From positions 757,716 to 821,715 of the forward strand of contig JAWQFM010000024.1 in assembly GCA_033442325.1 (NCBI GenBank): a stretch of 64,000 nucleotides of DNA. The letters are read 5' to 3'. Source of the DNA: Salpingoeca rosetta. Its lineage: Eukaryota; Protista; Choanoflagellata. A program made the position numbers and the translations under genes. This document shows positions 39,374-61,100 of the stretch, piece by piece. Each line of letters starts with the position of its first letter. Position 1 is the stretch's first letter. The notes below the pieces were generated by a model, which was not told the origin of the DNA, ran no database searches, and saw only the letters and a program-made list of their open reading frames with translations.

Positions 39374-42300
39374 TCAACGCCTGCTGTCGCCACGTTGGCT
39401 CCACAGGTTGTGTACGGCCTTGAAGTGCGAGCTCGCCTGGAAGTCATCATCATCGTCGTCGTCGTCATGGTCGCCATTGCCAATGTTGATGTTGACGTCG
39501 CGCGTGCTCGCTGCATCGTCCTCGTCCTCCTCGGGGATGGACTGCTGCCGCGTCTGCCAGGGCGTCGCCACGTCCTCAAACTGCACCTGAGGCATGACGA
39601 GCTCCGACTCAATGTCCATCGACGTCACCTCGCGCCGGCGCCGCGTGTTGGCGCTCTTGCGCATGCTCACGTTGGACATGGCGTCCTCCTCGTCCATGCT
39701 GTGCGCCACCACGTTGCCAAACGACACGCGCGGCTTGCTGCCAGAGTTGCCGCCAACCTTCAGGATGCCGCGCGAGGGCGCGGGCTGCTCGTCCTCAAAC
39801 ATGTCGTCCAGATCAACGTCGTCGTCGTCAATCCCGCTGATCATGTCATCCTCCACATCATCGTCCTCAGACTCGCTCGTGTCCATGTCCAGGTACCCCT
39901 CGTTGATGTTCTCGCCGTCGGGGCCCTCCATGCCGTCCAGCTCGTCAAAGTCGCTCAGGTCATCGCCGCTCATGTCCGCAGCAGCAAACATGGGCGGGTT
40001 GCGGTGGTGGCCCTTGCTCGTCTCGTGCGCGCCAAACATCTCCTGCTCAAACATCTCAAAGTCGCTCAGGTCGCCCAGCAGGCTGTCGTCGTCGCCGCTG
40101 CCGCTGCCGCTCGACCCAGACGAGCCATCAAACTCGTCCACGCTCGCTAGCGTCGTGCCGTCAGAGAGCGAGTCATCACTGTCGTCGTCGTCGTCGTCGG
40201 GGGCGAGGGTGGTGGTGGCACCACCAACGGGGCGACCGCCGCGCATGCGCGTGGGGAAGTTGGTCGTGCCGTACAGCGGGTTGTTGCGCAGGCCGCCAAA
40301 CATGGACGGAAGGCGCGTGTCCCACTCGTCCAGCGACTGCTTCGCGGTGGCCGGTACGCCAATGCGGCTGCCGCCCGTCTGGTCGTCAACCACCGTCGTC
40401 GTCTCCTTGTACCGCGCCACCTCGCCCGTCTCCGGATCAACCTCCCCGCCAGTGAACACCGTGCGCTCGGGCTCCTTGCGCATGGGCTCCGGCGTGCCAA
40501 ACAGCACGTCGCCGTGGTGCGCCAGCACCATCTTGCGCGCGTTATCCAGCTGCTTGCGCTGGCGCTGGTACCGCAGCAGCAGCAGCAGCAGCACAATGAA
40601 CACCAGCAGCGCGGCCGCCGTGAACCCGGCAATCAGGATGGGCTCCGCCTCGCTCTTGGCGGAGTTGGGGCCCGCACCAAGCAGGTCGTAGCAGTACGCC
40701 TCCACAAACAGCGTCTCGTTGTTGAGCGTCACCTGCACGCACGTCTCGTTGGCCGTCGCCACAATCGCCGGCGGGTACTCGCCCAGGTTGCGGCAGTTGG
40801 CCGTGTCGTACACGCGCAGGTTCACCAGCACCGGCCCGGTCTCCGCGTCGTTTTCGCGGTAGCACTCCACGCGCGCGCTGTGGTTGGCAATCACGTCCGA
40901 CAGGCACGTCTTGTGGAACTCGCGCGCCGCGGTGCTGGCCGGCTCGCCAATGTTCGTGTCGCACTGCTCCTCAGCAGAGAAGCGAACAGACGACTCAAAG
41001 CTGCGGTCCTGCGTGTCGACGCTGCGCAGCGTGCACGCCTCAAAGTCCTCCACCGTCGACAGGATTGTGTTCACGCGGTCGGTCGGCAGCACCTCCTGGC
41101 TCGTCGCGTTGACCACGTAGAAGGTGATGTCCGTCTGCGTGTTGGGGCTGTCCGTGTTGGCCAGCACCTCCAGCACCACCAGCCGGCCACCGAGAATGTC
41201 GCCCAGGGCGTCCAGGCACGGGTGGCTGTTGGTGACGTTGTCGTACCCCGCCAAAAAGTCGTTCACGTTGGGCCGCGTCGTGATGGTCACCAGGTAGTCA
41301 TCGTTGATGATGGCCACAAACACGCGCGCCTCAGCGCTGAGCGCGGGCGTGCCGCCGTCCGTCGCCGTCACGACCAGCTCAATCGTGTCCGAGAGCGAGC
41401 GCGTCTGCGTGCCCGTCGTGTAGATGACGCCCTCCTGTGAGATGCCAAACCCGTCCGTCGGTTGCGAGCCGCTCGACACCACCTCCACAGAGTACGTGAG
41501 CGCCTTGTTCTGCCCGCCGGCCAGCGTGTTGCTGTCCGCGTCCGTCGCCGTCACGCGCAGCACGGTCGTGTCGCGTGGCGAGTCCACGGAGATGCGCGCG
41601 CCGTACACAGATGGCGAGAACACGGGCGCGTTGTCGTTCACGTCAATCACAGACACCGAGTACTCCTTGAGCGTCGTGCGCGGCCACGGCGGCGAGTTGT
41701 CGGTCGCGCTCACCGTGAAGTTGAACGTGCGCTGCGACGCCACCTCGTAGTCCACCGTCTGCAGCAGGTGCACGCTGCCCGTGCTTGGGTCCAGGCCAAC
41801 GCGGCCCGCCTCCACCAGGCCCGTGAGCGGGTTGAGCACGCCGCCGGCCAGCGACAGCGTGGTCGCCGCCGTCTGGCCCGGGTCGGCGTCCGTGGCGCTG
41901 ACAGTGAGGATGGACGCCTGCTGCGCCGTGTCCTCCTTGATGCTGAACAGCGGGCCGGGCGCAATGGTGGGCGAGAAGTCGTTGATGGCGTCGGCGGTGC
42001 GCAGACGGTTGGCAAAGCTGCTCAGCGGGTTGAACCCGTTGGTGGCCAGCACGCTTACCGTGGACGTGGACGTCGGGCTGCCCTCGGGGCTCACCTCAAC
42101 AGCAAAGTCGAGCTGCTGCGTGTACGTGTACGTGCCATTCACGGCGCTGCCCGACATGAAGATGTCGCGGCCGGTGGTTGTGTCGCCCTGCGAGTCAAAC
42201 GTCACCAGCAGCACCGACGCACCCACCTCATCCGCCACAAAGTTGACCTCCGCGGACACGGTGTAGCGGTAAGTGGCCACGCACGTCGTCTCGCACTCGT

Positions 42301-45300
42301 GCTTCGTCTCAAAGTTGTTGGCGTTGCCCTGGCACCCGTAAAAGTCAAAAGCGACACAGGTGGCCGTGCTGCGGTCGTAGCGGTACCGCGTGACGGGGGC
42401 GCCCAGGTTGCAGTTGGTGCTGCCAGACGCGCGCGGCAGCAGGCACAGCGTGGGCTGCTGCTCCACCTGGTAGTCCTCAAAGAGCGGCAGGTAGCGGTCC
42501 GCGCGCACCAGCACGCTGGCGCTGGCCGGGTCGGGCGAGTACCCCGTCACGGCCGTGCCGCGCACAAACGTGCTCGCGCTCAGGTTGCTCTGCAGCAACG
42601 GATCGGGGTGGGACAGCAGCACAAACACGGCAGACGTCTCCGAGTCAATGTCGTTGCCGGGCTTGGCCTTGACCGTCACGTTGACGGTGAGCCGGCCCTG
42701 CGAGAACTGGTTCTGCACAGGCACCACCTCCACCTCCACAAAGCGCTGCAGGTTGAAGTTGATCAGCGCCATGTACTTGGCGTCCGCCAGGTTGATCTCG
42801 TCGTTCAGGTCCGCGTCCATGGCCGCCAGCTGCGCCGGAATGAGCTGCTGCTTCAGCTCCACGCCCTGCGGCTGGCGCTCAAAGTTGAACGAGCGCTCGG
42901 CCAGGTACAGCTGCGTGTACGAGACGTCGCGAATGTCAAACTCGCAGTCCCCGTTGGCGTCGCCGTTGAACCGGCTAAGGCAGTCTGCGCACGGCGGCGA
43001 GGCGCACGTCTCCACAGCGCGGCGCGCGCGCTCACGGCGCTCCTCCACGGCACGGGACGGCGCTGGCAGCGAGCGGCGCAGCACAGACAGCTGATCCGCC
43101 GTGTAAGGCACGGGCTCGCCAAACACGTCCCGCAACCGGGCGCCACTGTCATGATCAGCAACAGCAGCATCAGCAACGTCGCTGCTGCTGCTGCTGCGGC
43201 GGCNNNNNNNNNNNNNNNNNNNNNNNNNNNNNNNNNNNNNNNNNNNNNNNNNNNNNNNNNNNNNNNNNNNNNNNNNNNNNNNNNNNNNNNNNNNNNNNNN
43301 NNNNNNNNNNNNNNNNNNNNNNNNNNNNNNNNNNNNNNNNNNNNNNNNNNNNNNNNNNNNNNNNNNNNNNNNNNNNNNNNNNNNNNNNNNNNNNNNNNNN
43401 NNNNNNNNNNNNNNNNNNNNNNNNNNNNNNNNNNNNNNNNNNNNNNNNNNNNNNNNNNNNNNNNNNNNNNNNNNNNNNNNNNNNNNNNNNNNNNNNNNNN
43501 NNNNNNNNNNNNNNNNNNNNNNNNNNNNNNNNNNNNNNNNNNNNNNNNNNNNNNNNNNNNNNNNNNNNNNNNNNNNNNNNNNNNNNNNNNNNNNNNNNNN
43601 NNNNNNNNNNNNNNNNNNNNNNNNNNNNNNNNNNNNNNNNNNNNNNNNNNNNNNNNNNNNNNNNNNNNNNNNNNNNNNNNNNNNNNAACGTCGCTGCTGC
43701 TGCTGCTGCGGCGGCGGCGGCGGGTGGAGGAGACGGTGATGTGCACTTGAATCTGGCCCGCAACGGCGTCGCGTGGCGTGGCATCACCAATGGCAGTCCC
43801 CTGCAGGTCGTTGGTGGCAAAGGTGATGACAGAGCCAACAATCTGCGCCGGGTTGCGGGCGGGCGTTGCGGCGACACCGCGGAAGGTGATGCGAGCAAGC
43901 TCGACCGATGTGCCGGCGACCGTCTCCTCTGGGTCAACGGCGCCACCGACGCGAATCACGCCTGGCGGGTCTACCACGGCCTGGAAGATGCCCTTGGTCC
44001 AGCCAGCGCCCTCAGTGATCTTGGGGCCCGTGGTGGTGGTGGGCACCTCCAAAAAGGCGGTGCTGTAGCGAATCTCAAGGTCAATGGCGCCCAGGTTGAC
44101 GCCGCCCGTGTTGATGATCACGGGCACCTCAAACTCGTCGTCGCGCGCCTGAGCCGGCAGGGCGTAGCCGCCAGTGAAGCCCAGGTCAAAGTCGCCCACG
44201 TCCGGCTGCAGGTTGCAGATGATGGCCGTGGAGCCGGACACGAGGCTGTCGAGCACGCGGGCCACCACCTCCACCTGCGAGGCGCGTGTGCCCTGCAGCG
44301 TGGCCTGCGCCAGCGCGTTGACGGACAGCGGCGCGGTGGAGCCGTCCGAGATGACGGAAAAGGAGAGGGAGCCCGGCAGGAGCAGGGCGCCCGTCGTGGC
44401 GTCCACAAAGTCGTTGCGGATGGTGCCGTCGTCAAAGATGGCGCCCATGGCAATGGTGCTGCGCGCGCGGCTGGCAATGCCCTCAAACACATACGCACCG
44501 TCAACAACCGCCTTGCCCGGCAGCCGCAGGTCAATCAGCTGCTGCACGCGCACGGCGCGGTCCGTGACGGTGAGGAGCTGCGCCGGCGCATCAAACGAGC
44601 CAAAGCGCGCAGACACGTCCACTTGCAGGTCGCGCGAGGCGAGCGTGGCGTCCTGACCGCTGCGCACGGAAATCACCTTGGCACTGCTCACGCTGACAAT
44701 GCCCGTCTCCACCACGCCCGTGCCGGGCTTGAGGATGCGCGCGCTGCAGCCCGTTGTGACGTCCAGCGAGTCGCCGTTGGACAGGGTGAGGGCCACATTC
44801 ATGGCCGCCTGCTGGCGGACCGTGGCCGCGGCGTCGTTGGGGTTGAAGTAGCGGTTGAGCGATGAGACGGTCACGTTGTTGCTGTTGGCGTACGACGGGT
44901 ACGGGCGCAGCGCCACACGCACGCCCGTGGCGGCGACCACCTCCACGTCCACGCTCACGGTGATGTCCACGTGGATGAAGCGGATGGTGAGCACGCCTGC
45001 GCCGCCCGCGCCGCTGGTGGCGTTGGCCTGCGGTGCAATGGGGCGAATCACGGGCGAGAACGAGCCGTCCGCCGGCGGGCTGCACTCCAGCGACGCCTCG
45101 TCCGCGCAGATGGTGAACACGCCGTTGGCGCCGGAGAGGTCGTACACGGTGCGAGGGTCGGTGGCCATGTCAATGAGCTGCTCGTTACCGTTGCCAATGT
45201 CGTAGACCAGCGCCACGCCAATCTCGCTCTCCGTTGGCAGGCCCGCCGCTGCGGCGTCGTCGCTCTCGTACGTGAGCAAGGGGTCCACCCCCGTCACGCG

Positions 45301-48300
45301 CACGTCCGTGGGCGCGGGGATGGTCACGTCCACGAACGCGCTCGACTCAACAAGGTCAACCGAGTCTGTCTCCGGATCGGCGTTTGGTGACTCGCACAGC
45401 ACCGTCCACGTGGCGCTCAGCAAATTGCCAGAGCCGGAGCCCTGTGCCAGCACGTGCCTGTTGTCAAAGACGAGGTCGCCCGTGGACGGCACAGCAATCA
45501 CGCCGCGGTTCGCCTGGTCCACGGAGAGGCGAAGGCCAGTCTCCGGGCCAACGACCATGCGCGAGCCGTCCTGGAAGCGCGCAAACGCGGCCACGCTGCC
45601 CACCTCCTGCTCCTGGTCCAGCGCCTGCGAGATGGAGACGACCGAGGCCGACGCCAGGCCCGTGAAGGGGCTGTACAGCGGCTTGACCGTCATGTCCGTG
45701 AACACGATGAGCTCCAGCTCGTCCACCAGCAGGCTGGCAACGGTGCTGCCGCCGAGGCTCGGCACGGGCACGCTGCCCACGGCCTCCACTGTGGTGTTGC
45801 CAATGGTGCGCTCTGGCACAGCCGGGTTGATGACGGCAACGACTGCGCTTCCGAGGCGGAAGCCCCGCGCCACGTTGCCCTGCATCTGGATGGCGGTGGA
45901 CTGCGCCGCACCCGTGGCGTCGAGCGCCTGCAGCACGCCGCTCACGTCCTTGGTCACGCGCACGCGCACGGCGCCGGCGCCGCTCTCCATGCGGCTGAAC
46001 ATGGCAAAGGCGTGGATGCGGGTGTCCTGGAACTTGTCGCGGCACGTGGACGCGTCCTCGTCAAACCACTGCCACCCGGCCACGCGCGCCAGCATCGGGT
46101 TGTCCGCCTGCAGCTCAATCGGCAGCTGCGGCGCCCACACCTCACCAAGGCAGTCGCCGTTGGCGGTGGTGTTGCTCACGGCGTCGCGCACAGACACGGC
46201 GATGCTGGCGCCGGTCATGCCAGACGTCTCGTCGCCAGCGAGGACCACGCTTGAGCAGTCACTGCTCACGTCCCACACGTGCGGGTGGCGGGAGCTGCAG
46301 GACAGGCCTGGCGTTCCCGTGGTGCCGGTGACAAGCTGCATGTCGCCGGCAGCGTCGCTGGTCACGATGCGCAGCGGGAACGTCTGCTCCCCGCCGTTGA
46401 CGATGCAGGTCGTTTCGACAAATATGCAGCACTGGAGAATTCGCAGACAAATCAGGTATACCTGACTGATACATCGGTAAGTCGACTGGCCGCCTCATCG
46501 GAACCCCCAAGAGTGCTCCTTTTTCTACAAGCTGTTAAGACTCATAATCCTACTGTGTGTATCTGGATGTGATAATGGTCTTCCCGAGGTCAATTGTAAC
46601 TGATCCTCGTTCGGAGTCCCGCCGTGCCAGCAAGTTTTCACCATGTACGTATCGAGCGTACGAAGTGGGTTCGCGAACCGCCGTCCGACATATCGTAGTA
46701 ACGGACGCTTTCTAAAACCAACCTATATCCGGAATTCGCCTGATATGTATGACCTAGGCGACGCTACTGGAAGCAAGTATCACATAGTGTTGCGTTCTGG
46801 TTTCGAATCTCACACTCGTTCCTCATCGTGGGAGAGTACACAGCGGAGACTTATACAGAACTCCTTCGGACACTAACGGACATGGCCTAATTGGCGCGCA
46901 GCACCTTGCCCTTGAAGGCGGGGTGCGTGGGCAGCTCCACGAGGATGTTGCGGTTCAGCGTCCAGGGCTGCTCCTGCACAAGCGACACAGAGGGCAGCAG
47001 CGTGAGCGGGGCGCGCTCGTCCTCAAAGCCCGCCTGCACGGTCAGGGTGCGGCCGACACCGGCCACCGTGAACCATGCCGCGGGCACGGCGACGTTCACC
47101 GTGCACACGCCCAGGCGCGAAAACTGGTTGGTGCTGGAGCCCGCGGTGCAGGCCTGCTCCACGGCAACCGTGCTTGGGTCTGCGACGCCGAGGTCCGAGG
47201 CCAGGCCCGCGTCTGGAGTGATGCGCACCTTGACCGCCGTCAGCAGCGACGGCGGCGAGAAGTGCTCCGTGCGCACCTGCGCAGACACGCGCACGTACGC
47301 GTCGTCATGGTACACCTTGCTGGTGAGCAGCTCCACCCGCACCTGGTCAATGGCGCTCGGCACAGACGTGAACGCGCGCGAGACGGTGCCGGAGGCGAGG
47401 GCGGCCTCAAACGTGCCGCCCAGCCCCGTGTAGGTGGACGTGTAGTCGAGAATGTCAAACGTGTAGATGAGGTGGAACGTCACGTCCGCGTCCGTCGCCA
47501 GGCCGTTCAAGTCCATGGCCGTGACGCGGAACGTGACCGTCTCGCCCTGCTCGCGCACGATGACCGCGCTCACGGCAATCTCGCCCGTCTCCTCGTCAAT
47601 GTAGTACTCGCCGCCGCCGGCGTCTGGCGTCTTGAAGGAGTAGCGGACCACGGAGAAGTTGCCCGTGTCGCGGTCCGTGGCGTTGAGCTGCAGCACGACC
47701 GTGTCCTGCAGCGTGCCAATGCGCACGTTGGCCTCGTAGTGTGCCAGGTTGGACGTGTTGGCGGGGTAAAACGTGGCGTCGCCCTGCAGCGCCGGCCCAA
47801 ACATGGGGTGGTTGTCGTTGACATCCTCCACAATGACGGACACGGTGGCGGTGGTGGTGTGGAAGGGGAACGTCTGGTCCTGCGCCTGCACCGTCAGCAC
47901 AAACTGCGCCCGCGCCTCGCGGTCGAGCGGCAGCGTGTGCGTGATCTCGCCCGACACGGGGTCAATCTCAAACGTGACGGGGTCGTCGGTGCGGTCAACA
48001 ATGCTGTAGCGCACCTCCGCGGAGAGCCCAATGTCATCGTCCGTGGCCTGCACCGTGCCCACGGTCGACAGCGCCGGGGAGCTCTCCAGAAGCGAGAACG
48101 TGTACGTGGACAGGGTGAACACGGGTGAGAACGAGTTGGTGCACTCGCTCGTGGCAACGTCGTTGTCCAGGGTGGTGAGTGGGCTGTAGCCCGGCACGTT
48201 AACCTCCAGCGTCTGGCTGTCCCGCACGGGAAGGTTGAAGTTGATGGTGTCCGGGTACAGGAGCGGGGTCACAGACTCGGGCGGCCCGACGATAAACTCG

Positions 48301-49072
48301 ATGCGCGTGGGGTCTGTGCGCAGGTTGGAGTTGAGGGTGACCACCACCACTGAGACACCAATGGAGCCCACGTTGTCCGTGGTCATGTCTGTCTGGATGG
48401 CGGCCGCATACACACCGGCAGACGGGTTGACGCGCTCCGCGCGGATGAGCCCGCCAAACACGCCGTTCGACTGGCCCGTGTGGTCGATGCCAGCCACCTT
48501 GGTGCCCAGGCACTGCGGGCAGTCGTCCACCGACGAGGCAAACAGGCTGGTCATGGCGGACTGCTTGGAGGCGAGGTCAAAGAAGACGTACGTCTGCTGC
48601 TGGGCGTCGGGCGCGGTGTCACCCACGTCACCCTTCTGCAGCACCGTAGCCTCCAGGTACACGACACACCCGGCATCGCTCGTTACGTTGATGGGCTTGA
48701 CGGTGAGGTCGTTGAGGAAGCGCGACAGCTGCACGGAGGCCTTGGCCAAGTAGAAGGCATCGATGCTGTCAATGAGGCCGTTGCGGTCCGCATCCATGTT
48801 GTTCAGCTGCCGCAACGAGGGCGGCGAGGCAAGGAAGGCCGGGCCATACGTACCCGTGAACCCAACCAGGTCCTCCACAACGTACTGCAGCGTGTACGCC
48901 ACATCAACAATGTCAAACACGCAGTCGCCGTTGGCGTCGCCCGTCTCTGCGTCGCTGCCGCACGTGTCTGCACGGCGGCCACGCGACAGCACGCGCTGGC
49001 TCTTCTGCTGCTTGCCTGCCGACGTGTAGCGGACAAACGAGGGTGGCACGTTCACTGTTGCAACAACGTCTT

Positions 49073-49105
<33 letters not shown>

Positions 49106-52100
49106 GACGGCGGCGCCGGGCCGCGCTCAGCTGCACGTTGACCAGGCCAGCCACAAAGTCGCGGTCGGGCGTGCCAATCGGCGTTTGCCCAGACACAATG
49201 TCCGCCTCCACAAGCTGCTCCACAACGCCGCGAATCTGGGTGAGCCCGGTGCCGATGACGTTGAACTTGATGGTGGCGACGTGGTAGGCAGCGCCCTGTT
49301 GCGTGGCGTCGCTTGGGGAGCCGGACACGACGTACTCGCCTGGCGGGTCGTTGGTCTGCGCCACGAGCGGGCCGCCGCCCCAGTTGGCGCCCTCCGTCAG
49401 GCCGTTGTCCACGGCCTCCAGCTTGGCGTCGTCGTAGAACATGCGCAGCGTGAAGGCACCAAACGGCGTGTTGGCCACGTTCATGGCCACGCGCACGGTG
49501 ATGGTGTCGCCCACACTGGCGGGCTTGACGGGGATGCCGCTGCTGTCGCCCAGGTCAATGTCGGCAAAGGCCGGCTGCAAGTTGCACGCGAAGGACCTCG
49601 TCGCAGTGACGGAGGTGCCAACTGCGCTCGCCGTCAGCACCACGTTCTCGTGGTAGTTTCCGCGCAGGGTGACGGTGCCGCGCGCAGCGTCCACGGTTGC
49701 GGGCTGCGTCGTGCTGAGGGAGAAGGAGATGAGGCCCGGCAGCGTCGGGTCGCCGTTGTTGGCAAACAGCGTCAAGTACTCCGTGCCGTCGCTCAGCACG
49801 CACGCAAGCTTGGCCTGCGACGTCTGCTGGTCAATCACGCCCGTGAGCGTGGAGACGAAGGAGAAGCTCTTCAGCTGCGTCACCTGCACGGGGTTCTGGT
49901 CGTCCACGGTGATCTGCAGCGAGGACGCCTCCACGCCGGCAAACGCACCAATCAGGTCCACCGTGCCTTCGTTCAGGGCCTCCATCAGCTTGATGGTGCC
50001 AGAGTCGCCAATGGCCACCACGTTGTTGTTGGGCGTGGTCGTGCCCGCGCTGTACGTGACGTAGCTCGTCTCCGGGTGGGTGTTCACAGACAGGGTCGTG
50101 CCGTCGGAGATGCTCAGGGTCATGGCAAGCACGGCGCTCTGGCGCACGGACGTTGGGCCGATGCGGCTCAGCGTCGTCTCAGACACGGAGGCTGACCCAG
50201 AGTACGTGGGGTAGGGCGAGGAGAACACGCTCACGCCAGCCAGCTTGACAACCTTGACGTTGACGCCGTTGCCCGGGAGGCTGCGCAGGAGCGTTTCGTT
50301 GAGGTTGGTGAAGGTGACAAAGAGGCGGCCCGTGCCCACGTCCCCGTTGGAGTTGGGCACGATGCGCTGGGCATCGCCGTTGCGCTCCACGGTGAACAGG
50401 CCGTTGCTGTCCTCCAAGCGGTACTCGATGCGGTCGTCGAGGGTCATCTCCTTCTTGCGGTTGCCATCGTACAGCAGGAACACGCGCACGGTGCTGAACG
50501 TCTTGATGGAGCTCTCGCGGGCCAGCGGGTCCGCCGACGACACGATCCGGCTCTCCGAGGACGTGATCTCCACGCCAATCGGGTCAGCCAGCGTGACCTC
50601 GAGGTCCACGTTGCGCGTGGCGATGGTCTGTCCGCACGCCTGCCACGCCGCCGTCACGCGCACGCTGTCAGAGTCCGTGCCGGCCACCACCTGGTCCGGC
50701 ATGATGGACGCCACCGCAGCGTTGGAGGACGTGAGCATGAGCCCGTTGGCCGAGGACACGGCAACACGCGTGCCGTCGTCCATGACGGCGGACGCAATCA
50801 CGTGGCCGATGCGGCCCTCCACGTCAAGCTTGAGCGAGTACTGCGCAAGCGCGGCGGGGGAGCTGGACCGGGCGTACGTGGTCGTGGACTGTGGCTCCTC
50901 AAGCGTGAGCTCAGAGGCCACCACGACGTTCAGGTCAATCACGCCCACGGGGTCCGTGGTCACGTCGACGGCGGTCGTGCCCACGGTGCGGCCATCGCTC
51001 GTCACAACAGACACCTGCGCGCTGCCCACGCTCTGGCCCGTGATGGTGGGCGGGGACGCCGTCTTGCTCAGCGCCACGTTACCGTTGCTCACGGCCAGGC
51101 GCGACTTGACGGTCTCCGTCACATCCACCGTCACCACGGCCGAGCCAGAGCCCAGGGAGAAGTCCGCGTGGGCAGCAATGTCCGCCGACTGGAAGATGGC
51201 GGCGCAGGCGTTGGCCTCGTCGCGGTACTCGGAGAACTGGCCCAGGCTGGCATCGCTCGTGGTGAGGGCAAGCGGCGTGGCCGGGTGCCACACCTTGAAG
51301 GGCACGCGCGTGGAGGCGCTGCCAATGGTGACAACCACGTCCGCGCTGGTGGCCCCGCTCGTCTCCGTGCCGTCCAGGCGCATGGAGCAGCCCGAGGTCT
51401 GCAGCACAGCCGCGTTGGCGCTGCTGCAGCTGGCGCTCGCAGACGAGCACGAGTCGCTGCAGGCCGCGGTGGCCGACGAGCGCGGGCAGGCGTAGCACGC
51501 GAGCGTGGTGATGCCAACCGTCTGCGCGCTGCCCGTGAGCCGCGCCGTGTTGACCACCTGGCTCTGAGCTGCGTAGGCAATCACGCCGCGCACGCCGTTG
51601 GCGGCAATGTACACCTGGCCGGTGCGGCCCGTGCCCGAGCGGGAGATGAAGGTGCCGGCAACAGAGCCCGTCTGGCCGCGCACCTTGACACGCGACACGC
51701 GCGTGCTGCCAAGGCCCTCCACCACCATGCTCATGGAGGCAAAGGCGTCCGTGGTAGCGCCAGACTGCACAATGTAGTCGATGGTAATGAGCTGCTGGCG
51801 ACCCACCTCGCCCTGCTGAATCTTGTCCGGCACGGCGTTGGCGGCAATGACCGTGGTCGAGCCAGACTCGGTGACAATGGAGTTCCACAGCGACGAGTCA
51901 ATGTTGATGCGCTCCAGGGCAATGTTGCTGTCTGTGGTGAAGGAGAGCGTGAACGTCGTCACGTAGTATGTCACGTCCGTGGACACGGTGGCGCGGAAGC
52001 GCTGGCCAGGGTACACGGGCCGGCCAGGCAGCTCCTGCACAACGTCGTCCACGTACAGCGAATCCGACACGCTGATGCGCGGGCGCAGCAGCACCGATGC

Positions 52101-55100
52101 CAGGTCAGTCATGGTGCTGCCGGCGATGCCATAGCGCACGGTGACGCGGTGGTCCTCGCCCGGAACGAAGTACGCCGCGGGCAGGTCCGCGGTCGTCAGC
52201 GAGCACACGCCCGTGTTGACGTTGGTGGTGCACTGCTTGGAGATGCTCGAGCTCTGGATGTCAAGCAGCGCCTGGTCCGGCACCAGCTCCACGCGCACGG
52301 TGGTGGCGGAGAGGCGGGAGGAGAAGTCCTCATCCCGCACTTGCAAGGCCACGCGGACGGATGCGTCGTCGTACCACACCTCGTCGTCATCGTTCAGCAG
52401 CACCGCCCGCACCGTCGTCGCGTCCTTGCGCGCGTCGCGGAAGTTGCCAGAGGCGCTCAGGGCACCAAACTGCGTGGTGACGGTGCCTGTGCTCAGCACG
52501 TTGGCGTCCACCAGGAGGCCAAACTGCTGCTGCACGTCGCCATTGGCGTTGCGCGCCGTGTTGCCGATGAGGAAGCCGCGCCCAGAGATGGAGAAGGTGG
52601 GCAGCAGCTCGTCCACCACCAGCACACGCAGCGTCATGGTGCCCTGCCTGGCCTGCGGCCGGCCTTGGTCGTCCGCCTCAATGGTGAGGGTGAACGCGGT
52701 GGGCAGGTCCGAGGACACGTCGCGGCCCGTGCGCACCTCGCCACTCAGCCGATCGATGGTGAACGTGTTGCCGACGTTGCCGTCCAGGATGCTGTAGGCG
52801 ATGCCGCTCGTCTCACCGCACGCCGCATCGCCGTCCGTGGCCATGACCGTGGCCACCAGCACGCCGGCCTTTGCGCCAGAGGAGATGGACGTGCTCACCT
52901 GCGTCTGGTTGAACGCCGGTGCGGCCGTGTTCTCCTCCACCACGCGCACGTTGACAAAGCCCTGCGTCTGCATCACGGGGATGCCGCCGTCGCGGGCCAT
53001 GACGCTCAGCTGCACCGCGGCGTCCGTGAAGCCGCACAGCGAGCGGGTGAGCGTGAGCACGCCCGTTGCCGGGTCCAGGCTGACGTAGCCCGGGTGGCTG
53101 GTGGACACCAGCGAGAACCGCAGGAGCGCGTTAGGACCAGAGTCTGCGTCCGTGGCGTTGATCTGAAAGATCGGCGTTCCCACGGCCGCGGCGCGCCCAA
53201 GGGTGGCGACAAACGGCGACTGCCCAAACACGGGCGCGTTGTCGTTGGCGTCAAGCACGTTCACGGTGATGGTGCCGCTGCCCGTGCGAGCAGGGACACC
53301 GTGGTCGCGCATGCTCACGCCAAAGGAGTACGTGGTTTGCGACTCGTAGTCGACCTGGGTCTTCAGGTACAGGCCACCGTCCTTCCGCAGCTCAAAGGGG
53401 AAGTTCGCCAGGGCAACGGGGTCGGTCTCCGTGAGGAAGTAGCTGATCACGCTGGCATTACCCGCGTCAGCATCAACCGCCTGCAGCGTGGTGATGAGCG
53501 TGCCGTTGGCTGCGCTCTCACTCAAGGAGGTGGTGGCGGTGCCGCTGGGGAACGCGGGTGTGTTGTCGTTGACGTCGTCGATGCGAATCGTCACCTCCAC
53601 GGAGCCAACGTTGGGTGGCATGCCGTTGTCCGTGGCCTGCACCAGCAGCTGGTACGTGGCAAACGTCTCACGGTCAAGCGCGGACGCAACGGTGATGGCG
53701 CCCGTGCTGGCGTTGATGGCAAAGTCGCCGCGCGAGCCGAGCGCAATACTGTACATCACAGTCGTGGCAACCGTGTCCCGCTCCGTGGCCACCAGCTGCA
53801 GCGCCAGGTCGCCCACGCTCGCGTCCTCAGACACGTGCACCTCGTAGCTCGTCTGGTTGAACACGGGCGCGTTGTCGTTGACGTCGGCAACAAAGATGAT
53901 GGCGGTGATGTAAGTGGTGTGCACGGGCGTGCCGCTGTCGGAGGCAGACACGTTGAGCGAGAACTGGCTCCTCGTCTCAAAGTCCAGCGACTTTCGCAGC
54001 CACAGCGCGCCCGTGTCCGCGTCCAGCTCGAAGGTGTCGTCAACGTTGCCGGACACGATGGCGTACGTCACGCGCGAGGCCGGCGAGTTGTCCGCATCCG
54101 TTGCCGTGATGTTGAGGATGACGGTGTCGTTGAAGGCGTCGCCTTCCGGCAGGCGGCGGCTGTAGAAATCGGGCACGGAGAACACGGGCGAGTGGTCGTT
54201 GACATCCAGCACCTCCACAATCACCGTTGTTTCGTCCTGGAAGTCGATGTTGCCGGCATCGTGCACGCGAACCGTGACGTTGTACGTAATCTGGCCCATC
54301 TCGCGGTCGAGCGTGATCAGGGACACCAGGCGACCGTCGGGCTCCACCGTAAAGGAGCCAGGCACCTCCTCCGACAGGAGCGTGAACACGCTGATGTTGT
54401 TCGGGTAACTGTCCAGGTCTGTGGCGGGGAGCAAAATGGTGGTGTTGCCACCGTCCACTTGCTCGGGCACGCGGAAACGAAGCGGGTGTGACGGGAAGCG
54501 CGGTGGCTCGTCGTTGACGTCCGTCACCCGCACCGTGACGGCCGTGGTGTCGTTGAAGGAGGCCACAACCGGGTCGCGGGCCAGGACCACGACGTGGTAC
54601 GTGGTACGCTGCTCGCGGTCGAGCACGGGCGCGTTGCCAGACGCGTTGGCGTTGAAGGACAGCATGCCCGTCGCCGCGTCGATGGAGAAGAAGTTTTGCT
54701 CGTTGCCGGCGACAATCGAGTACACAATCTGCGCGTTGCTGCCCGTGTCCGCGTCCACCGCCTGCACCTGCACCAGGTCAACGTCGGCCACCTCATCCTC
54801 GGCGACGTGGGCAACAAAGGCCTGCTCAAACACGGGCGGGTTGTCGTTGACGTCGGTGACGGTGATGCGCACGCTGCCCGAGCGTGTGAGCGGCGGGGTG
54901 CCGCCATCGGAGGCCAGAATCTGCAGGTCGCGCGTGGTTGCTGCCTCGTAGTCAAGCATCTTGCTGAGCGTCAGCTCGCCCGTGGCGCGGTCCAGGGAGA
55001 AGGCGGCGTCGTCGTTGCCAGACACAATGCTGTAGCGCACCTGTCCGCCGGCGCCGAGATCCGGATCGCGCGCCAACACGGTGAGCAGCGACGAGCCCGC

Positions 55101-58100
55101 GGCCGTGGACTCAGGGATGGATGCGGTGAACTGCGTCTTGGAGAAGGTGGGCACGTTGTCGTTTATGTCCAGAATGTCAATGAGGATGTTGATCGTGTCC
55201 GTGAGCGGGTTCTCCACAACGTCGTCCGTCACCCTGACGCTGAGCACGTACAGGGCGGCCGTCTCGCGGTCCACCGACCCGTTGATGCTGATCACGCCCG
55301 TGCTGGGGTCAATGGCAAACGCGTCCGCCACGTTGCCGCTGACGATGCTGTAGGTGAGGGCGGCCGTGTCCCCGCAATCCGCGTCAGTGGCAGCGACCGT
55401 GGTCACCACATGGCCGTCTGCCGCGCCTTCGGACACGTTGAGCTGCAGCGTGGCCACGGGGAACTGCGGCGCGTGGTTGTTGACGTTGAGCACGGTCAGG
55501 GTCACGGTCACCGAGGTGGACTGGCCACCGGTGCCAAACGCGCCCTCAGAGGCCACCACCGTCAGCGTGTACACAGACTGGTCGGCGGCACACAGCGCCT
55601 GCGTGCTGGTGATGGCGCCCGTGACGGTGTCGATGGCCCAGCGGCCCAGCGCGTTGCCCGTGGTGATGGTGTAGCGGACGGGGCGCGCTTGCGTGCGATC
55701 GCCGTCCACGGCCTCCACCGTCAGCACGGTCGTGCCCGCGGCAATGGTCTCCTGCACGTCTGCGCTGTACGAGGCCTGGGAGAACACGGGCGGGGAGTCG
55801 TTGGCGTCGGCGATCACTACCACGAGCGGCGCCGTGCTCACGCGGCGCACGGGCGTCTGCTCGTCCGAGGCCTGGATGCGAAGCACAAAGCTGCTGCGCT
55901 CCTCGCGGTCCAGCGAGCGCAGCAGCCGCACCACACCGGTGCTGTTGTCGATGGTGAAGTGCGGGTCCGTGGCGTTGTCGCCGCTGATGATGGAAAAGGC
56001 GATGGCCTCCGTGTCGCCGCAGTCCTCGTCCGTGGCGCTCACCTGCGCCACAAACTCGCCGGGGCCGGCAAGCTCCGAGACGACAATCGGGTAGGAATCC
56101 ACGCTCAGCACGGGGTCGTGCAGATTCTCGTTGGACACGTTGATGGTCACCGTGGCCGTGGCCGTGTCGACAGAGTCTGTCGCCTGCACCGTGAGCACAT
56201 GCTGGGGGTTCCGCTGCGCGCACAGCGGCGCCTGGTTCACCAGCTCGCCGCTCACGGGGTCCAGGCGGAACGTGTCGTCGACGTTGCCGGCGATGATGCT
56301 GTAGCTCACGGTATCGGTGCCCTCGGGGTCGGTCGCCGTCAGGCGCACGATGGGCGAGTCAATGACATTGGCCTCCCCCAGCGTCACCATGTACGAGCTC
56401 GGGTTGAACACGGGCGGCTCGTCGGGAACGTTGCCCACCTTGATCACCAGCGTCAGGCGGCCCACGCGAGAGGGCACGCCGTCGTCGCGCGCGTCAATGG
56501 CCACCGTGTACTGCGTGCGCGTCTCGTAGTCCAGGGCGCGCAGCAGCGTGACAATGCCCGTGCTCGCGTCAATGCCAAACTCCTGGTTGGCAGACAGGTC
56601 AGAGTCGAGCGTGTTGATCGAGTACCGCAGGCCAAGCGCGTCGCCGCAGTCGGCGTCCGTCGCCGTCGCCTGCAGCACAAACGTGCCCATGGCCGTGTTC
56701 TCGGGCACTGTCACGGTGAGCGTGGCGGGCGAGAACGTTGGCGCGTTGTCGTTGACGTTGGAGATGGTCACGTCCAGGACAGCGTAGCCAACCAGGCCAT
56801 CAAAGCGCGAGTCGCGAATCTCCAGCACCAGCGAGTACGCCGGCGCCGTGCGCGCGCACTGCGCCACCAGCAGCGTCACCGCGCCCGTGCTCGCGCCCAG
56901 GTCAAACACGTTGGCGTCGTTGCCAGAGGCAATCGTGTACGTGTACGTGGTCCCGGCGGTCGCCGATGCCACCGTCGTGAGCACGCTGCCTGTGGCGGTT
57001 GTCTCCGGCACGCTCACCGTGTATTTGTTCTGGGAGAACTGGGGCGTGTTTGGCGCGGGCGCCTGCTTGGTGATCTGCACCTCAACGAGCGTGGAGCGGC
57101 CGCCGGCGTCCGTGGCCACGGCGTCCAGCACGTACGGCGTGTCCTGCGTCAGCGGTGCGACCACGGTGATCACGCCCGTCGTTGGGTGGATGGTGAAGGC
57201 AAACTGCGTGTTGCGGTTCAGCGTGTACGTGATGCTGTCGTCGCAGTCGGCGTCCGTGGCCCTGACGCGGCCGGCGTACGCGTTGAGGGAGCTGTCTGCG
57301 GTGAAGCTGTAGCTGGCCTGCTCAAACACCGGCGACGCCGCATTGGACGCGGAGAAGCTCAGCTGGACAACCGTGCCCGCGCTGCGTGCCTCCGGCTGGC
57401 CGTCGTCCGTCGCCGTCACCACCAGTGTGTACGAGCTCTGCGTGCGCGAGCACACGGGAGCGGCCAGCGTCAGGCTGCCCGTCACAGCGTCAATGGCAAA
57501 CACGTTGCCCGTGTTGCCGGAGGTGATGGCATAGGCAATGTTGTCGCCGTCCGCGTCGGTCGCCCCGACCAGCACGAGCTCCGTGCCAGTCGACACAGAG
57601 TCGGCAAACGTGCCGCTGTACGTGGCAGCAAACACGGGCGCGTACTGGTTCACGTTGAGGACGGTGACGAGCACGGTGGCGGTGGAGGTGCGCGGGGACG
57701 AGGCAAAGTCATCCGTGGCGGCTACGGTGAGCGTGTGTTGCGCAGCGCCACCGCTGCTCACGTCTGCGTTGAGCGGCTGCACAACAGCGAGCTCGCCCGT
57801 CTCGCGGTTGATGGCAAACAGGCCGTTGCTGTTGCCGCCGGTGATGCGGTATGTGACCGCGTCCCGGCAGTCGGCGTCGGTTGCCTGCAGCTGCAGCAGC
57901 ACGCTGCCCACGCTGCCCGTCTCCGAGACGTTGACGCTGTACTGGGCCTGGGAGAAGGCGGGCGCGGCCGTGTTGGCCGGCACCACGCTCACGTCCACCA
58001 GCGTGTACGACTGCAGGTCGGGCCGCGTCTTCGACTGCGCCTGCACCTGCAAGCTGTACGCGTCCTCCGACGCAGCGCACACGCGCGACATGAGCGTGAT

Positions 58101-61100
58101 GGCGCCGCTGTTGGCGTCCACGGCAAACTTGCCGGCCGAGTTGCCGCCCGTGATGCTGAAGGAGGCAATGCCGGTGCGGTTGGTGGCGACCGTCGCCACC
58201 GTCGTGCCGATGCTGGCCGACTCGGCCAGGTCCGCCGTGTAGCGCGAGCTGGTGAACAGCGGGAAGTCGGGCGACGTCTCCACCACGTTGATGAGCACAT
58301 ACATGGTGTCGGAGAGATCGCCATCAGAGGCAGACAGCTGCAGCGAGAAGGAGGAGCGCTCGGCAAAGTCCAGCTCGCGCACGAGCGTGATCACGCCGCC
58401 AACCGTGTCGAGGTCAAACGTGGGCGGCGTCGTGTCCCCGCTCACCACGCGGTAGCGGATCTCCGCCTCGTCTGCGCAGTCCTGGTCCGTTGCCTCCACG
58501 CGCGTGACGTAGTCGCCCAGGGAGGCTGTCTCCAGCAGCGTCACCCGCACCAGGTCCTGCGTGAACACGGGAGCAAACGCGTTGCCCGCCGTCACGGTGA
58601 TGGTGAACTGCGTGTCGGTCGACTGCGGCGGCGTCCCCGTGTCCGTGGCGCGCACAATGAGGTTGTACGTGCTCTTGTCGGCTGCGCAGAGCGGCCCAAG
58701 CGCGCGCACAATCACTCCAGTGGTGGGATCGACGCGGAAGGCGGAGCCCGCATCGCCACCGACAATGTTGAAGAGCACCAGGTCGCCGTCGCCGTCCGTC
58801 GCCTTGACCGTGCCAATCGCTGAGCCCGCAGACGCGGTGTCCGTCACGCTGGCAGACATCTGCGTGTGCGTGAACACGGGCTTGTGGTCGTTCACGTTGC
58901 CGACGGCGATGGTGATGGTGGTGGTGGCCGTGTTGGGCACGGGCGTGGCGCTGTCCGAAGCCTGCACGCGAAGCTCGTAGGTGTCCTGCACCTCGTAGTC
59001 GAGCGGCTCAACCAGCGTCACGATGCCCGTAGTAGCGTTCACGGAAAACGCGCTCATGTGCACGCTGGTGTTGCCGTTGACGCTCAGCAGCGCGTACGAC
59101 ACGCTGTCAAAGCAGTCGCCGTCCGTGGCGTACGCCGTGGCCACCGCGGTCGGCGCCTGCACAGACTCGAGCACGCTCACGGTGGCATCCGGCACGCTGA
59201 AGACGGGCGCGTTGGCGTTGCCGGGCAGGATGGTGACGTTGGCCGTGGCCGTGGCCGTGCGGGTGCCGTCGCCCGCCTCAATCTGCAGCAGGTACGTCAC
59301 GCCGGGGCTGTTGCGGTCGGCCAGGCACAGGCGGTGGCGCGGGAAGACGTTGCCCGTCGTCACTTCAATGGCAAACGGGAAGGCGGCCGTGGCCAGGGAG
59401 ATGGGCCCGGTCGCAGACACAATGCGATGCACCACAGGCAGGGCAAGCGCGTCTGCATCCGTGGCCTGCACCCGTAGCACGGGGGCGCCAACCGCCACAC
59501 CGTCGTGTACCACGGCGCTGTACTCCGTGTTGGCAAACACGGGCGCCTCATCGTCGACGTCCGTCACGGTGATGGTGAGCAAGGACACGTCGGTCTTGCC
59601 ACCCGCATCCGCCACCTGCACGCCCATGACAAACTGGCGCGGCTGGCCGTTGGCCTGCTCGTAGTCGAGCGCCCGTGCCAGCGTGAGCACGCCGCTTGCG
59701 CTGTCCAGCACAAAGGTGGCCGGCGTCGTGTCGCCGGAGATGACGCTGTAGGTGAGGGCGTAGTCGTCCCCGCAGTCCGCGTCCGTGGCGGCCAGCGTGG
59801 TGATGACCGTGCCGGTGGCCGTGTTCTCGGGAACAGACACGCTCGCCGTGCTCACCGCAAACGATGGGGACGCGGCATTCGCGTTGGTGACCGTCACATC
59901 AAACACGGCCACGCCAGCAGCGCTTGCGGGAAAGGCCGTGTCTGCCACGCTGAGCACGAGGCGGCGCAACGGCTCTGTGTCGGCGCACAGGAGGCCGGCC
60001 TGGTTCACGCGAAGCTCGCCAGAGCTGGCGCCCAGCGAGAACGCGCCGTCATCGTTGCCGGCAGTGATGGAGAAGGTGTGCGTGGCAGAGACGGTGCCGG
60101 CAGAAACGAGGCCGACGAGGGTGCCCGCAGCCGCGTTCTCCGCCACGTTGGCCGTGTACATGGGCTGCGAGAACGCCGGCGCGTTGGGGTCCGCGGCGAC
60201 GACGCGCACGCGCACGTTGGCCTGATCCGTGTTGGATGCGCCATCCTGCGCCTGCACGGTCAGAATCTCCTCGTCGCCCTGCTGCAGGGAGCTGGAGGCC
60301 ACGACAATGAGACCCGCAGACGTCACCGACACGCGGGAGCTGGGACCGCCCACCTGCGAGTAGGTGAGTGTCGTGTCCTCGCAGTCCGCGTCCGTGGCGC
60401 TGAGCACCAGCACCACAGAGTTGAGGGCGGCGTCAGCAGCCACGTTGGCCTCATACAGTACAGTGGAGAACGCGGGCGCAAACGTGTTGCCCGCGGTGAG
60501 GGTGACGGTGAGCACGGCGTCCGTGTACAGGGACGTGGGTTCACCGTCATCGGTCGCGCGCACAACGAGGGTGTACGTGTCAAGCAGGCTCGCGCACAGG
60601 GGCGCGGCCACGGTGATGGCGCCCGTGCTCGCGTCAATGGCAAAGGCATTGTCTGCGTTGCCAGAGACGAAGCTGAAGGCAACGGCGTCGCCATCCGCGT
60701 CCGTGGCGCTGGCCGTGGTCACGGCCGTGCCTGTGGAGGCGTCTTCGGAGAGGGTGACGGAGGCCTGGCCCAGGGACAGCACGGGTGCGTTGTCGTTGGT
60801 GTTGTTGACGGTGATGGTGAGGGTGAGCTCGTCAAACTCGGGCGGGTGCGTGCTGTCGCCCTCGTCTGTGGCGCGCACGGTGAGCGTGTACGAGCTGGCG
60901 TCAGCGTAGTGGATGGCAGAGGCCACAAATACCTCGCCAGTGTTGGCGCCCACGCCAAACACGGCCACGCTTGGGTCGCCGGTGAGCAGGTGCCCCGTGC
61001 CCTCGAGCGTGTACGTGAGGCGGTCACCGCAGTCCACGTCCACGGCCTGCACGGTGGTCACGCGCGTGCCCACGGTGGCACCCTCCACCACGGAGGCCGT

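Follow-up and report, generated by a model that had tools for sequence, protein, structure and literature searches.

A 64,000-nucleotide stretch of the genome of the choanoflagellate Salpingoeca rosetta (NCBI GenBank assembly GCA_033442325.1, contig JAWQFM010000024.1, positions 757,716 to 821,715 of the forward strand; the whole stretch is called the window here) holds a minus-strand gene for a giant cadherin in which one and the same cassette occurs twice. Each copy consists of a cohesin, the basic run RRRRR, a Ser run, a spacer, a second basic site of the form R-x-R-R, and a pair of 12-residue calcium loops that are each followed by a helix. The reading of this arrangement that we favor, tentatively and somewhat short of calling it probable, is excision of the spacer by a furin/kexin-type convertase, after which the resulting chains stay joined through the cohesin–dockerin pair. 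The basic sites are the strongest new result of the analysis; they hold their positions in distant homologues around a spacer that varies.

In the proposed sequence of events, the protein would fold as a single chain in the secretory pathway, and a furin/kexin-type proprotein convertase would cut it twice, once behind the basic run with which the cohesin ends and once behind the R-x-R-R that immediately precedes the dockerin, so that the spacer would be removed. Convertases of this type are present in opisthokonts. Three large chains would result, and the junctions between them would be held non-covalently by a calcium-loaded dockerin seated on the cohesin immediately ahead of it. The joint would thus be a calcium-dependent link that is able to open, much as in the heterodimers of furin-cut Notch, FAT1, and LAR-type phosphatases. 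The analysis shows what the domains are, that the cutting motifs are conserved and nearly exclusive to the linkers, that the spacer is predicted to be disordered, that cohesin and dockerin are strictly adjacent, and that other receptor classes reuse the cassette. We infer the cleavage, the binding, the calcium dependence, and any release; swapping in trans and gating by force or calcium are speculation. Overall, the sequence signature is strong, and the cleave-and-reclasp idea put forward in an earlier reading of this DNA (the original prediction) is plausible and open to testing. Its count of three chains is right once a run of N letters and a misassembled block, both treated below, are discounted, and would be wrong otherwise. 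The layout that it described, with a cohesin, RRRRR and poly-Ser, RGRR or RARR, and an F-hand pair occurring twice, is found in full, with every element in its place on the minus strand:

49119–49565, minus strand: cohesin of cassette 1, recognized by Pfam and by its AlphaFold2 (AF2) fold
49104–49118, minus strand: basic site 1 of cassette 1, RRRRR, immediately past the last strand of the cohesin
48984–49103, minus strand: spacer 1, 40 residues, opening with nine Ser (49077–49103) and predicted to be disordered
48972–48983, minus strand: basic site 2 of cassette 1, RGRR, 14 residues ahead of the first calcium loop
48708–48971, minus strand: dockerin-like module 1, with two calcium loops each followed by a helix, and an N-terminal Cys pair
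48903–48938 (DANGDCVFDIVD) and 48759–48794 (DADRNGLIDSID), minus strand: calcium loops of module 1
43723–44196, minus strand: cohesin of cassette 2, matching the family profile at 8e-44
43708–43722, minus strand: basic site 1 of cassette 2, RRRRR; SSSSSDV comes next and extends to the gap
43031–43203, minus strand: spacer 2 past the gap, the first 29 bases of which repeat 43687–43715
43019–43030, minus strand: basic site 2 of cassette 2, RARR, and then a stretch with four Cys
42734–43018, minus strand: dockerin-like module 2, aligning over its full length with 28 other modules
42926–42961 (DANGDCEFDIRD) and 42782–42817 (DADLNDEINLAD), minus strand: calcium loops of module 2

Cohesin and dockerin assignments

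A word search for mid-sized relatives returned two proteins only, so an exhaustive profile search was needed. With the cassette as query, 1.84 billion representative proteins were searched, and 366 protein clusters match at an expect value (E) of 1e-30 or below. Giant homologues that carry two or three cassettes each number eleven, and Salpingoeca urceolata is the source of one.

The cohesin is identified by both sequence and fold. The Pfam family Cohesin (PF00963) matches cassette 1 with 26.8 bits, against a cut-off of 24.1, and cassette 2 with 23.8 bits, just under it; the profile to which the cassette 2 domain matches at 8e-44 is that of a family of 28 homologous cohesins. For cassette 1, an AF2 model was made on the basis of 30 homologous cassettes, and its predicted local distance difference test score (pLDDT) exceeds 90 across the cohesin. 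The best 50 Foldseek matches of this model in the PDB are all cohesins, headed by 6kgf_C (E of 1.7e-9, template modeling (TM) score of ∼0.7 normalized by target), as expected for the nine-stranded jelly-roll fold of the family. When long pieces of the protein are scanned with Pfam, neither Cohesin nor Dockerin is listed at E ≤ 0.01; they appear only when the cassette is scanned alone.

For the dockerin, the case is made by the family. Module 1 scores 15.5–18.6 bits with Dockerin_1 (PF00404), under the cut-off of 22.9, and module 2 has no Pfam Dockerin_1 match of its own. With a profile of 29 homologous modules, bacterial type I dockerins rank first (4dh2_B at 1e-7, 4fl4_A at 5e-7, 2ccl_B, and 1ohz_B) and calmodulin follows behind them at E of ∼5e-3, while Dockerin_1 is matched by 23 of the 29 modules, the best at 1.6e-9. 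All four loops in the window retain Asp or Asn at ligand positions 1, 3, 5, 9, and 12 of the 12-residue calcium loop, and these columns are invariant or nearly so in the alignment of the 29 modules. The AF2 model of cassette 1 places one helix after each loop (construct residues 225–239 and 273–283, pLDDT 90–96). The homologous modules also have a Cys in the first loop, which is paired with one or three Cys residues just upstream. The dockerin call is the weaker of the two in the window itself and is sound at the level of the family.

Both domain assignments of the original prediction therefore stand, that of the cohesin backed by profile and fold, with cassette 1 above the Pfam cut-off, and that of the dockerin borne out by the family profile and the intact calcium ligands, though the window's own modules lie under the cut-off. 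In the hidden Markov model scans that it had proposed, Cohesin is over the cut-off in one cassette and just short of it in the other, and the cut-off of Dockerin_1 is reached by homologous modules but not in the window.

The calmodulin match of the module profile and the low Pfam scores in the window could be taken to mean that the module is merely an EF-hand pair that stiffens the stalk, with no cohesin–dockerin binding, and that the cuts serve the shedding of the distal cadherin array; FAT1, for one, has a separate shedding route (PMC3953070). However, calmodulin scores worse than the bacterial dockerins by four orders of magnitude, and a generic EF-hand pair need not always follow a cohesin; we consider this explanation very unlikely.

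Two further features of the modules were seen. Residues 10 and 11 of the first loop vary with the class of cassette, being hydrophobic (IV, II, or VV) in the class of cassette 1 and mostly Ile or Val followed by Arg in the class of cassette 2. In bacterial dockerins, these are the positions that set specificity, and the difference could point to class-specific pairing. At the DNA level, the first loops of the two cassettes (42932–42964 and ∼48908–48940) are identical in 31 of 33 bases, while the protein sequences of the two dockerin modules are only 42% identical; a strong bias in codon use could account for this, as could gene conversion on a local scale.

Basic motifs in the linker

Motifs were counted in ∼77,000 residues of homologues, with the linker taken as the region within 115 residues ahead of the first calcium loop. 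Of 48 strict R-x-[KR]-R motifs, 38 are located in linkers (37 counted by script, and the RRRRR at the gap, which belongs to linker 2), and the motif is ∼74 times denser there than elsewhere in the homologues. Most of the motifs outside linkers sit in C-terminal tails. The window's open reading frame (ORF) of 5702 residues contains exactly two R-x-[KR]-R motifs, and both are in linker 1. A wider set of 158 cassettes includes 107 with the strict motif, versus 1.1% of control windows.

The positions of the sites were surveyed in 23 cassettes from the giant homologues. Site 1 is at least dibasic in all 23 and falls 12–15 residues past a conserved FVAG strand, with the strict motif in 14; site 2 has the strict motif in 20 and falls 10–24 residues ahead of the first loop. 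The homologues compared in this way are only 25–45% identical. The spacer between the two sites ranges from 2 to 77 residues and shows a pairwise identity of 20%, below the 32% of the cohesin and the 37% of the dockerin. Conservation does not extend to the poly-Ser run, which only the species of the window has; it stems from a trinucleotide repeat that is also the cause of the assembly gap in cassette 2.

In the AF2 model of cassette 1, pLDDT drops below 60 at construct residues 161–205, and both basic sites lie in or at the edge of this stretch. Motif, conservation, and predicted disorder are thus those of a proprotein convertase substrate, in which R-x-[K/R]-R occurs in an exposed, conserved segment of an extracellular region. 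The original prediction had named conservation of the basic linker as a test, and the outcome is positive, with both sites conserved in position among the homologues and the spacer not. Two fixed candidate convertase motifs around a free-running spacer are, on the sequence evidence, the pattern of an excised connecting peptide. Proinsulin-type connecting peptides have the same layout, in which a poorly conserved spacer, bounded on either side by a basic convertase site, separates two parts that form a unit. The chains of insulin are held by disulfides, however, whereas the link proposed here is a non-covalent domain pair.

Docking in cis and the distribution of the cassette

The single-chain AF2 model of cassette 1 has a predicted TM score (pTM) of 0.77. 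With 55 disordered residues in the chain, a value this high would by our estimate mean that both domains are placed relative to each other, that is, that the model docks the dockerin on the cohesin ahead of it. A search of the ESM Atlas with this docked model gave cohesin-only matches with TM scores by query of 0.47 or less and thus no independent view of the docked pair. As the model of a second cassette described below is less favorable, the support of AF2 for docking in cis is best described as mixed.

The distribution of the two domains bears on the same question. Among the best 150 of the 366 matching proteins, 140 do not resemble bacterial scaffoldins, and these hold 201 complete cassettes. 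Dockerin-only matches in the best 150 number four, all at truncated protein N-termini, and cohesin-only matches number 22, mostly at truncated ends or in weak upstream cohesins. The strict 1:1 adjacency of cohesin and dockerin in 201 cassettes favors a pair in cis over a swap between cells.

Several observations weigh against the favored reading. On the side of cleavage, the cut is read from motifs only, about one-third of the cassettes have no strict motif, and in P0010 and P0011, the most divergent homologues, both sites are mostly missing while cohesin and dockerin are kept. The pair is therefore older than, or independent of, cleavage. The same facts fit an explanation in which the linker is never cut, the cohesin and the dockerin stay in a single chain as a fixed unit of two domains, and the basic clusters bind polyanions or serve as a hinge; the bacterial relatives, too, have at this place a Pro/Thr linker that is not cut. 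A polyanion-binding patch would not require the exact R-x-[KR]-R spacing, however, and an uncut linker does not account for two motifs that are fixed around a spacer of 2 to 77 residues and almost absent elsewhere in very long ectodomains. We regard it as unlikely that the linker stays intact.

On the side of docking, the modules lack the Ser-Thr pair by which type I dockerins achieve recognition. In addition, the AF2 model of the P0006 cassette, which has a spacer of 2 residues, shows its domains with the same confidence as the model of cassette 1 but has a pTM of 0.57, a value that corresponds approximately to the cohesin's share of the chain alone and suggests no confident docking. Finally, a second, weaker cohesin-like domain is located 800–900 residues upstream in several homologues (P0004:2812-2918, P0005:2845-2972, P0006:2689-2805, and P0003:3241-3375). 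It is probably the TMEM132-type cohesin, and it could be the real partner of the dockerin; in the window protein, no significant match to such an upstream domain is seen.

These upstream domains, together with the undocked short-linker cassette of P0006, the presence of two or three cassettes in one protein, the many receptors that bear a cassette, and the difference between cassette classes at first-loop residues 10 and 11, are consistent with a protein that is cut and clasps in trans. The freed dockerins would then bind cohesins on other molecules, cohesins in the other supermodule, or the upstream TMEM132-type cohesin, and give swapped or polymeric assemblies like those of the cellulosome. 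Trans systems of the cellulosome type typically split the two domains over different proteins and in unequal numbers, though, which is at odds with the 1:1 adjacency in 201 cassettes, and AF2 docked the pair in cis in cassette 1 of the window. Clasping in trans is, in our view, quite unlikely.

Beyond the giant cadherins, the cassette is found in receptors of several kinds, an ankyrin-tailed one among them. Among 25 single-cassette proteins, 23 have the TMEM132 fourth domain, and the companion domains are Cadherin in 12, 7tm_2 in two, and tyrosine phosphatase in one, with ankyrin repeats, TNFR, and EGF in others. The two 7tm_2 (secretin-type) receptors, one of which is from Codosiga hollandica, have the cassette in the ectodomain (P0100:651-953 and 1196-1424; P0141:1153-1440 and 1789-1974), and no GPS/GAIN or SEA match is found in them with Pfam at E ≤ 0.001. 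The nearest bacterial relatives are scaffoldin-like proteins of Spirochaetales, in which a cohesin is followed by a Pro/Thr linker and then a dockerin, and a language-model search places the cassette beside small bacterial cohesin-plus-dockerin proteins.

In a broader reading, the cassette would be a portable "cut and hold" joint in general use among pre-metazoan surface receptors (choanoflagellate cadherins, receptor tyrosine phosphatases, and secretin-type seven-transmembrane receptors) and possibly a mechanical fuse or a switch triggered by force or calcium. In function it would then correspond to GAIN, SEA, and the Notch heterodimerization domain, with a bacterial-type domain pair as its material. 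We hold this extension to be doubtful. If the link is indeed non-covalent and calcium-dependent, it could act as a fuse or release switch.

Two observations concern the range of the module. P0118 (NCBI MAS41851.1) is a receptor tyrosine phosphatase of 2185 residues with the cassette, EGF repeats, and Y_phosphatase, which was deposited as a protein from a metagenome-assembled genome of Rhodobacteraceae; it is almost certainly from a eukaryotic contig that was binned into a bacterial genome. The ESM Atlas search with the docked model also brought up a cluster of 161 proteins that combine the TMEM132 fourth domain with a cohesin-like fold; they are recorded mostly from eukaryotes, with haptophytes as the commonest phylum. 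The reach of the module may extend beyond holozoans.

The host gene and its known counterparts

The cassettes belong to one minus-strand gene, the ORFs of which (46887–63995, 42853–46365, and 39374–43135) read together as a single protein. Other features of the gene and its assembly are as follows:

40574–40639, minus strand: transmembrane helix, a hydrophobic stretch followed by basic residues
42281–42445, minus strand: Kunitz/BPTI protease-inhibitor domain, E of 1.3e-14
43204–43686: run of N letters, a spurious gap at which the contig ends overlap by 29 bases
46401–46892: misassembled block inside the gene, which makes an apparent stop at 46887–46889

The two breaks that separate the ORFs arose in assembly. 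In the case of the N run, the 29 bases 43175–43203 are identical to 43687–43715 and are in the same codon phase. The Logan contig that covers 42400–43203 continues for nine further letters that equal 43716–43724, and the next contig starts near 43695; the resulting 30-letter overlap is that expected of neighboring 31-mer unitigs. Contigs of the public runs end in the GCT/GGC repeat at this gap. The orthologue P0018 (∼40% identical) has the same cassette, and its sequence is uninterrupted here. From the identical flanks, the overlap of the contigs, and the uninterrupted P0018, the N run is an artefact, and translation reads through in one frame. The alternative that sequence is truly missing at 43204–43686 was considered and rejected, as the ends overlap. 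When both ends of the gap are merged, the spacer of cassette 2 would be 55 residues long.

At the second break, four of four public runs have 469 different letters in place of the window's 492 at 46401–46892. The difference of 23 letters puts the flanking ORFs in one frame and removes the stop at 46887–46889. An intron at the stop and ORF break was likewise rejected, because the contigs of the four runs restore the frame with the 469 letters.

The product of the gene is a single giant cadherin, type I in topology and coherin-like in kind, with two TMEM132-like supermodules, each of which ends in a cohesin, a predicted disordered spacer, and a dockerin. The protein in the window comprises more than 34 cadherin repeats, two blocks with TMEM132-type immunoglobulin (Ig) domains, the Kunitz domain, two more cadherin repeats, the transmembrane helix, and an acidic tail. 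By Pfam, Ig_TMEM132_4th and Ig_TMEM132_5th precede each cohesin. As both cassettes are upstream of the transmembrane helix, they are predicted to be extracellular. Cadherin repeats, cohesin, TMEM132-type Ig domains, and a transmembrane helix are thus joined in one protein, as in a coherin or TMEM132-like cadherin, and the context suggested originally is right. The Kunitz domain is ∼95 residues past dockerin 2 and is also present in the homologues P0002, P0003, and P0018 (Pfam); an inhibitor domain near a predicted protease site is curious.

Coherins are described in choanoflagellates and sponges (PMC6030884; Sanchez-Pulido and Ponting 2017, citing Nichols et al. 2012), and, like the window protein, they are cadherins that have cohesin domains and TMEM132-type Ig domains. 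In TMEM132 the cohesin is upstream of the Ig domains, and a dockerin homologue is undetectable in vertebrates (PMC6030884). That article mentions no second cohesin behind the Ig domains and no dockerin or basic sites in coherins, all of which the window protein has. In the open-access literature, to which the search was confined with subscription papers outside it, we found no paper that describes the cassette or links dockerins to choanoflagellate receptors, and a literature search on TMEM132 with furin gave nothing relevant.

Compared with the bacterial systems (cellulosomal type I and the non-cellulosomal tandem proteins), the two folds and families are the same and both calcium loops of the dockerin are intact. 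The hosts are here eukaryotic membrane receptors, however, the linker has two convertase motifs instead of Pro/Thr, and cohesin and dockerin are always 1:1 neighbors. The modules also differ from bacterial dockerins in their N-terminal Cys pair or quartet, in a longer insert between the loops (47–48 residues from loop to loop), and in the absent Ser-Thr pair.

Among receptors, Notch at its S1 site and the LAR-type phosphatases are furin-cut and held non-covalently, and FAT1 undergoes furin-type S1 processing in the secretory pathway (PMC3953070). Common to these and the window protein are a giant cadherin or receptor ectodomain, a furin-type site, and a membrane-held heterodimer, which is here a prediction. 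The three known systems have one proven cut and a different holding domain, whereas the window protein has two motif-predicted cuts around a spacer, with cohesin–dockerin as the proposed holder. GAIN/GPS and SEA are similarly ectodomain modules of adhesion-type receptors that give two attached fragments, as is predicted here, and in the 7tm_2 receptors the cassette sits where adhesion G-protein-coupled receptors (GPCRs) have the autoproteolytic GAIN domain. GAIN and SEA cut themselves, however, whereas an external protease would cut the cassette, and no GPS/GAIN or SEA family is found in the window protein with Pfam at E ≤ 0.01. The window protein is thus a member of the cohesin family and, at the profile level, of the dockerin family, and it is not of the FAT1, Notch, LAR, GAIN, or SEA families.

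Choanoflagellates are the closest living relatives of animals, and we know of no mode of action for their giant cadherins and receptors. If the favored reading is true, it would supply a concrete, testable maturation step for these proteins and a type of binding partner for those eukaryotic cohesin domains, so far unexplained, that have human TMEM132 proteins as relatives. As bacterial cohesin–dockerin pairs are among the mechanically strongest protein links (PMC6030884), the joint would also be of interest to mechanobiology and protein engineering. The design of a receptor that is processed and then held together non-covalently, as in Notch, FAT, and the adhesion GPCRs, would have been reached before animals with a different device.

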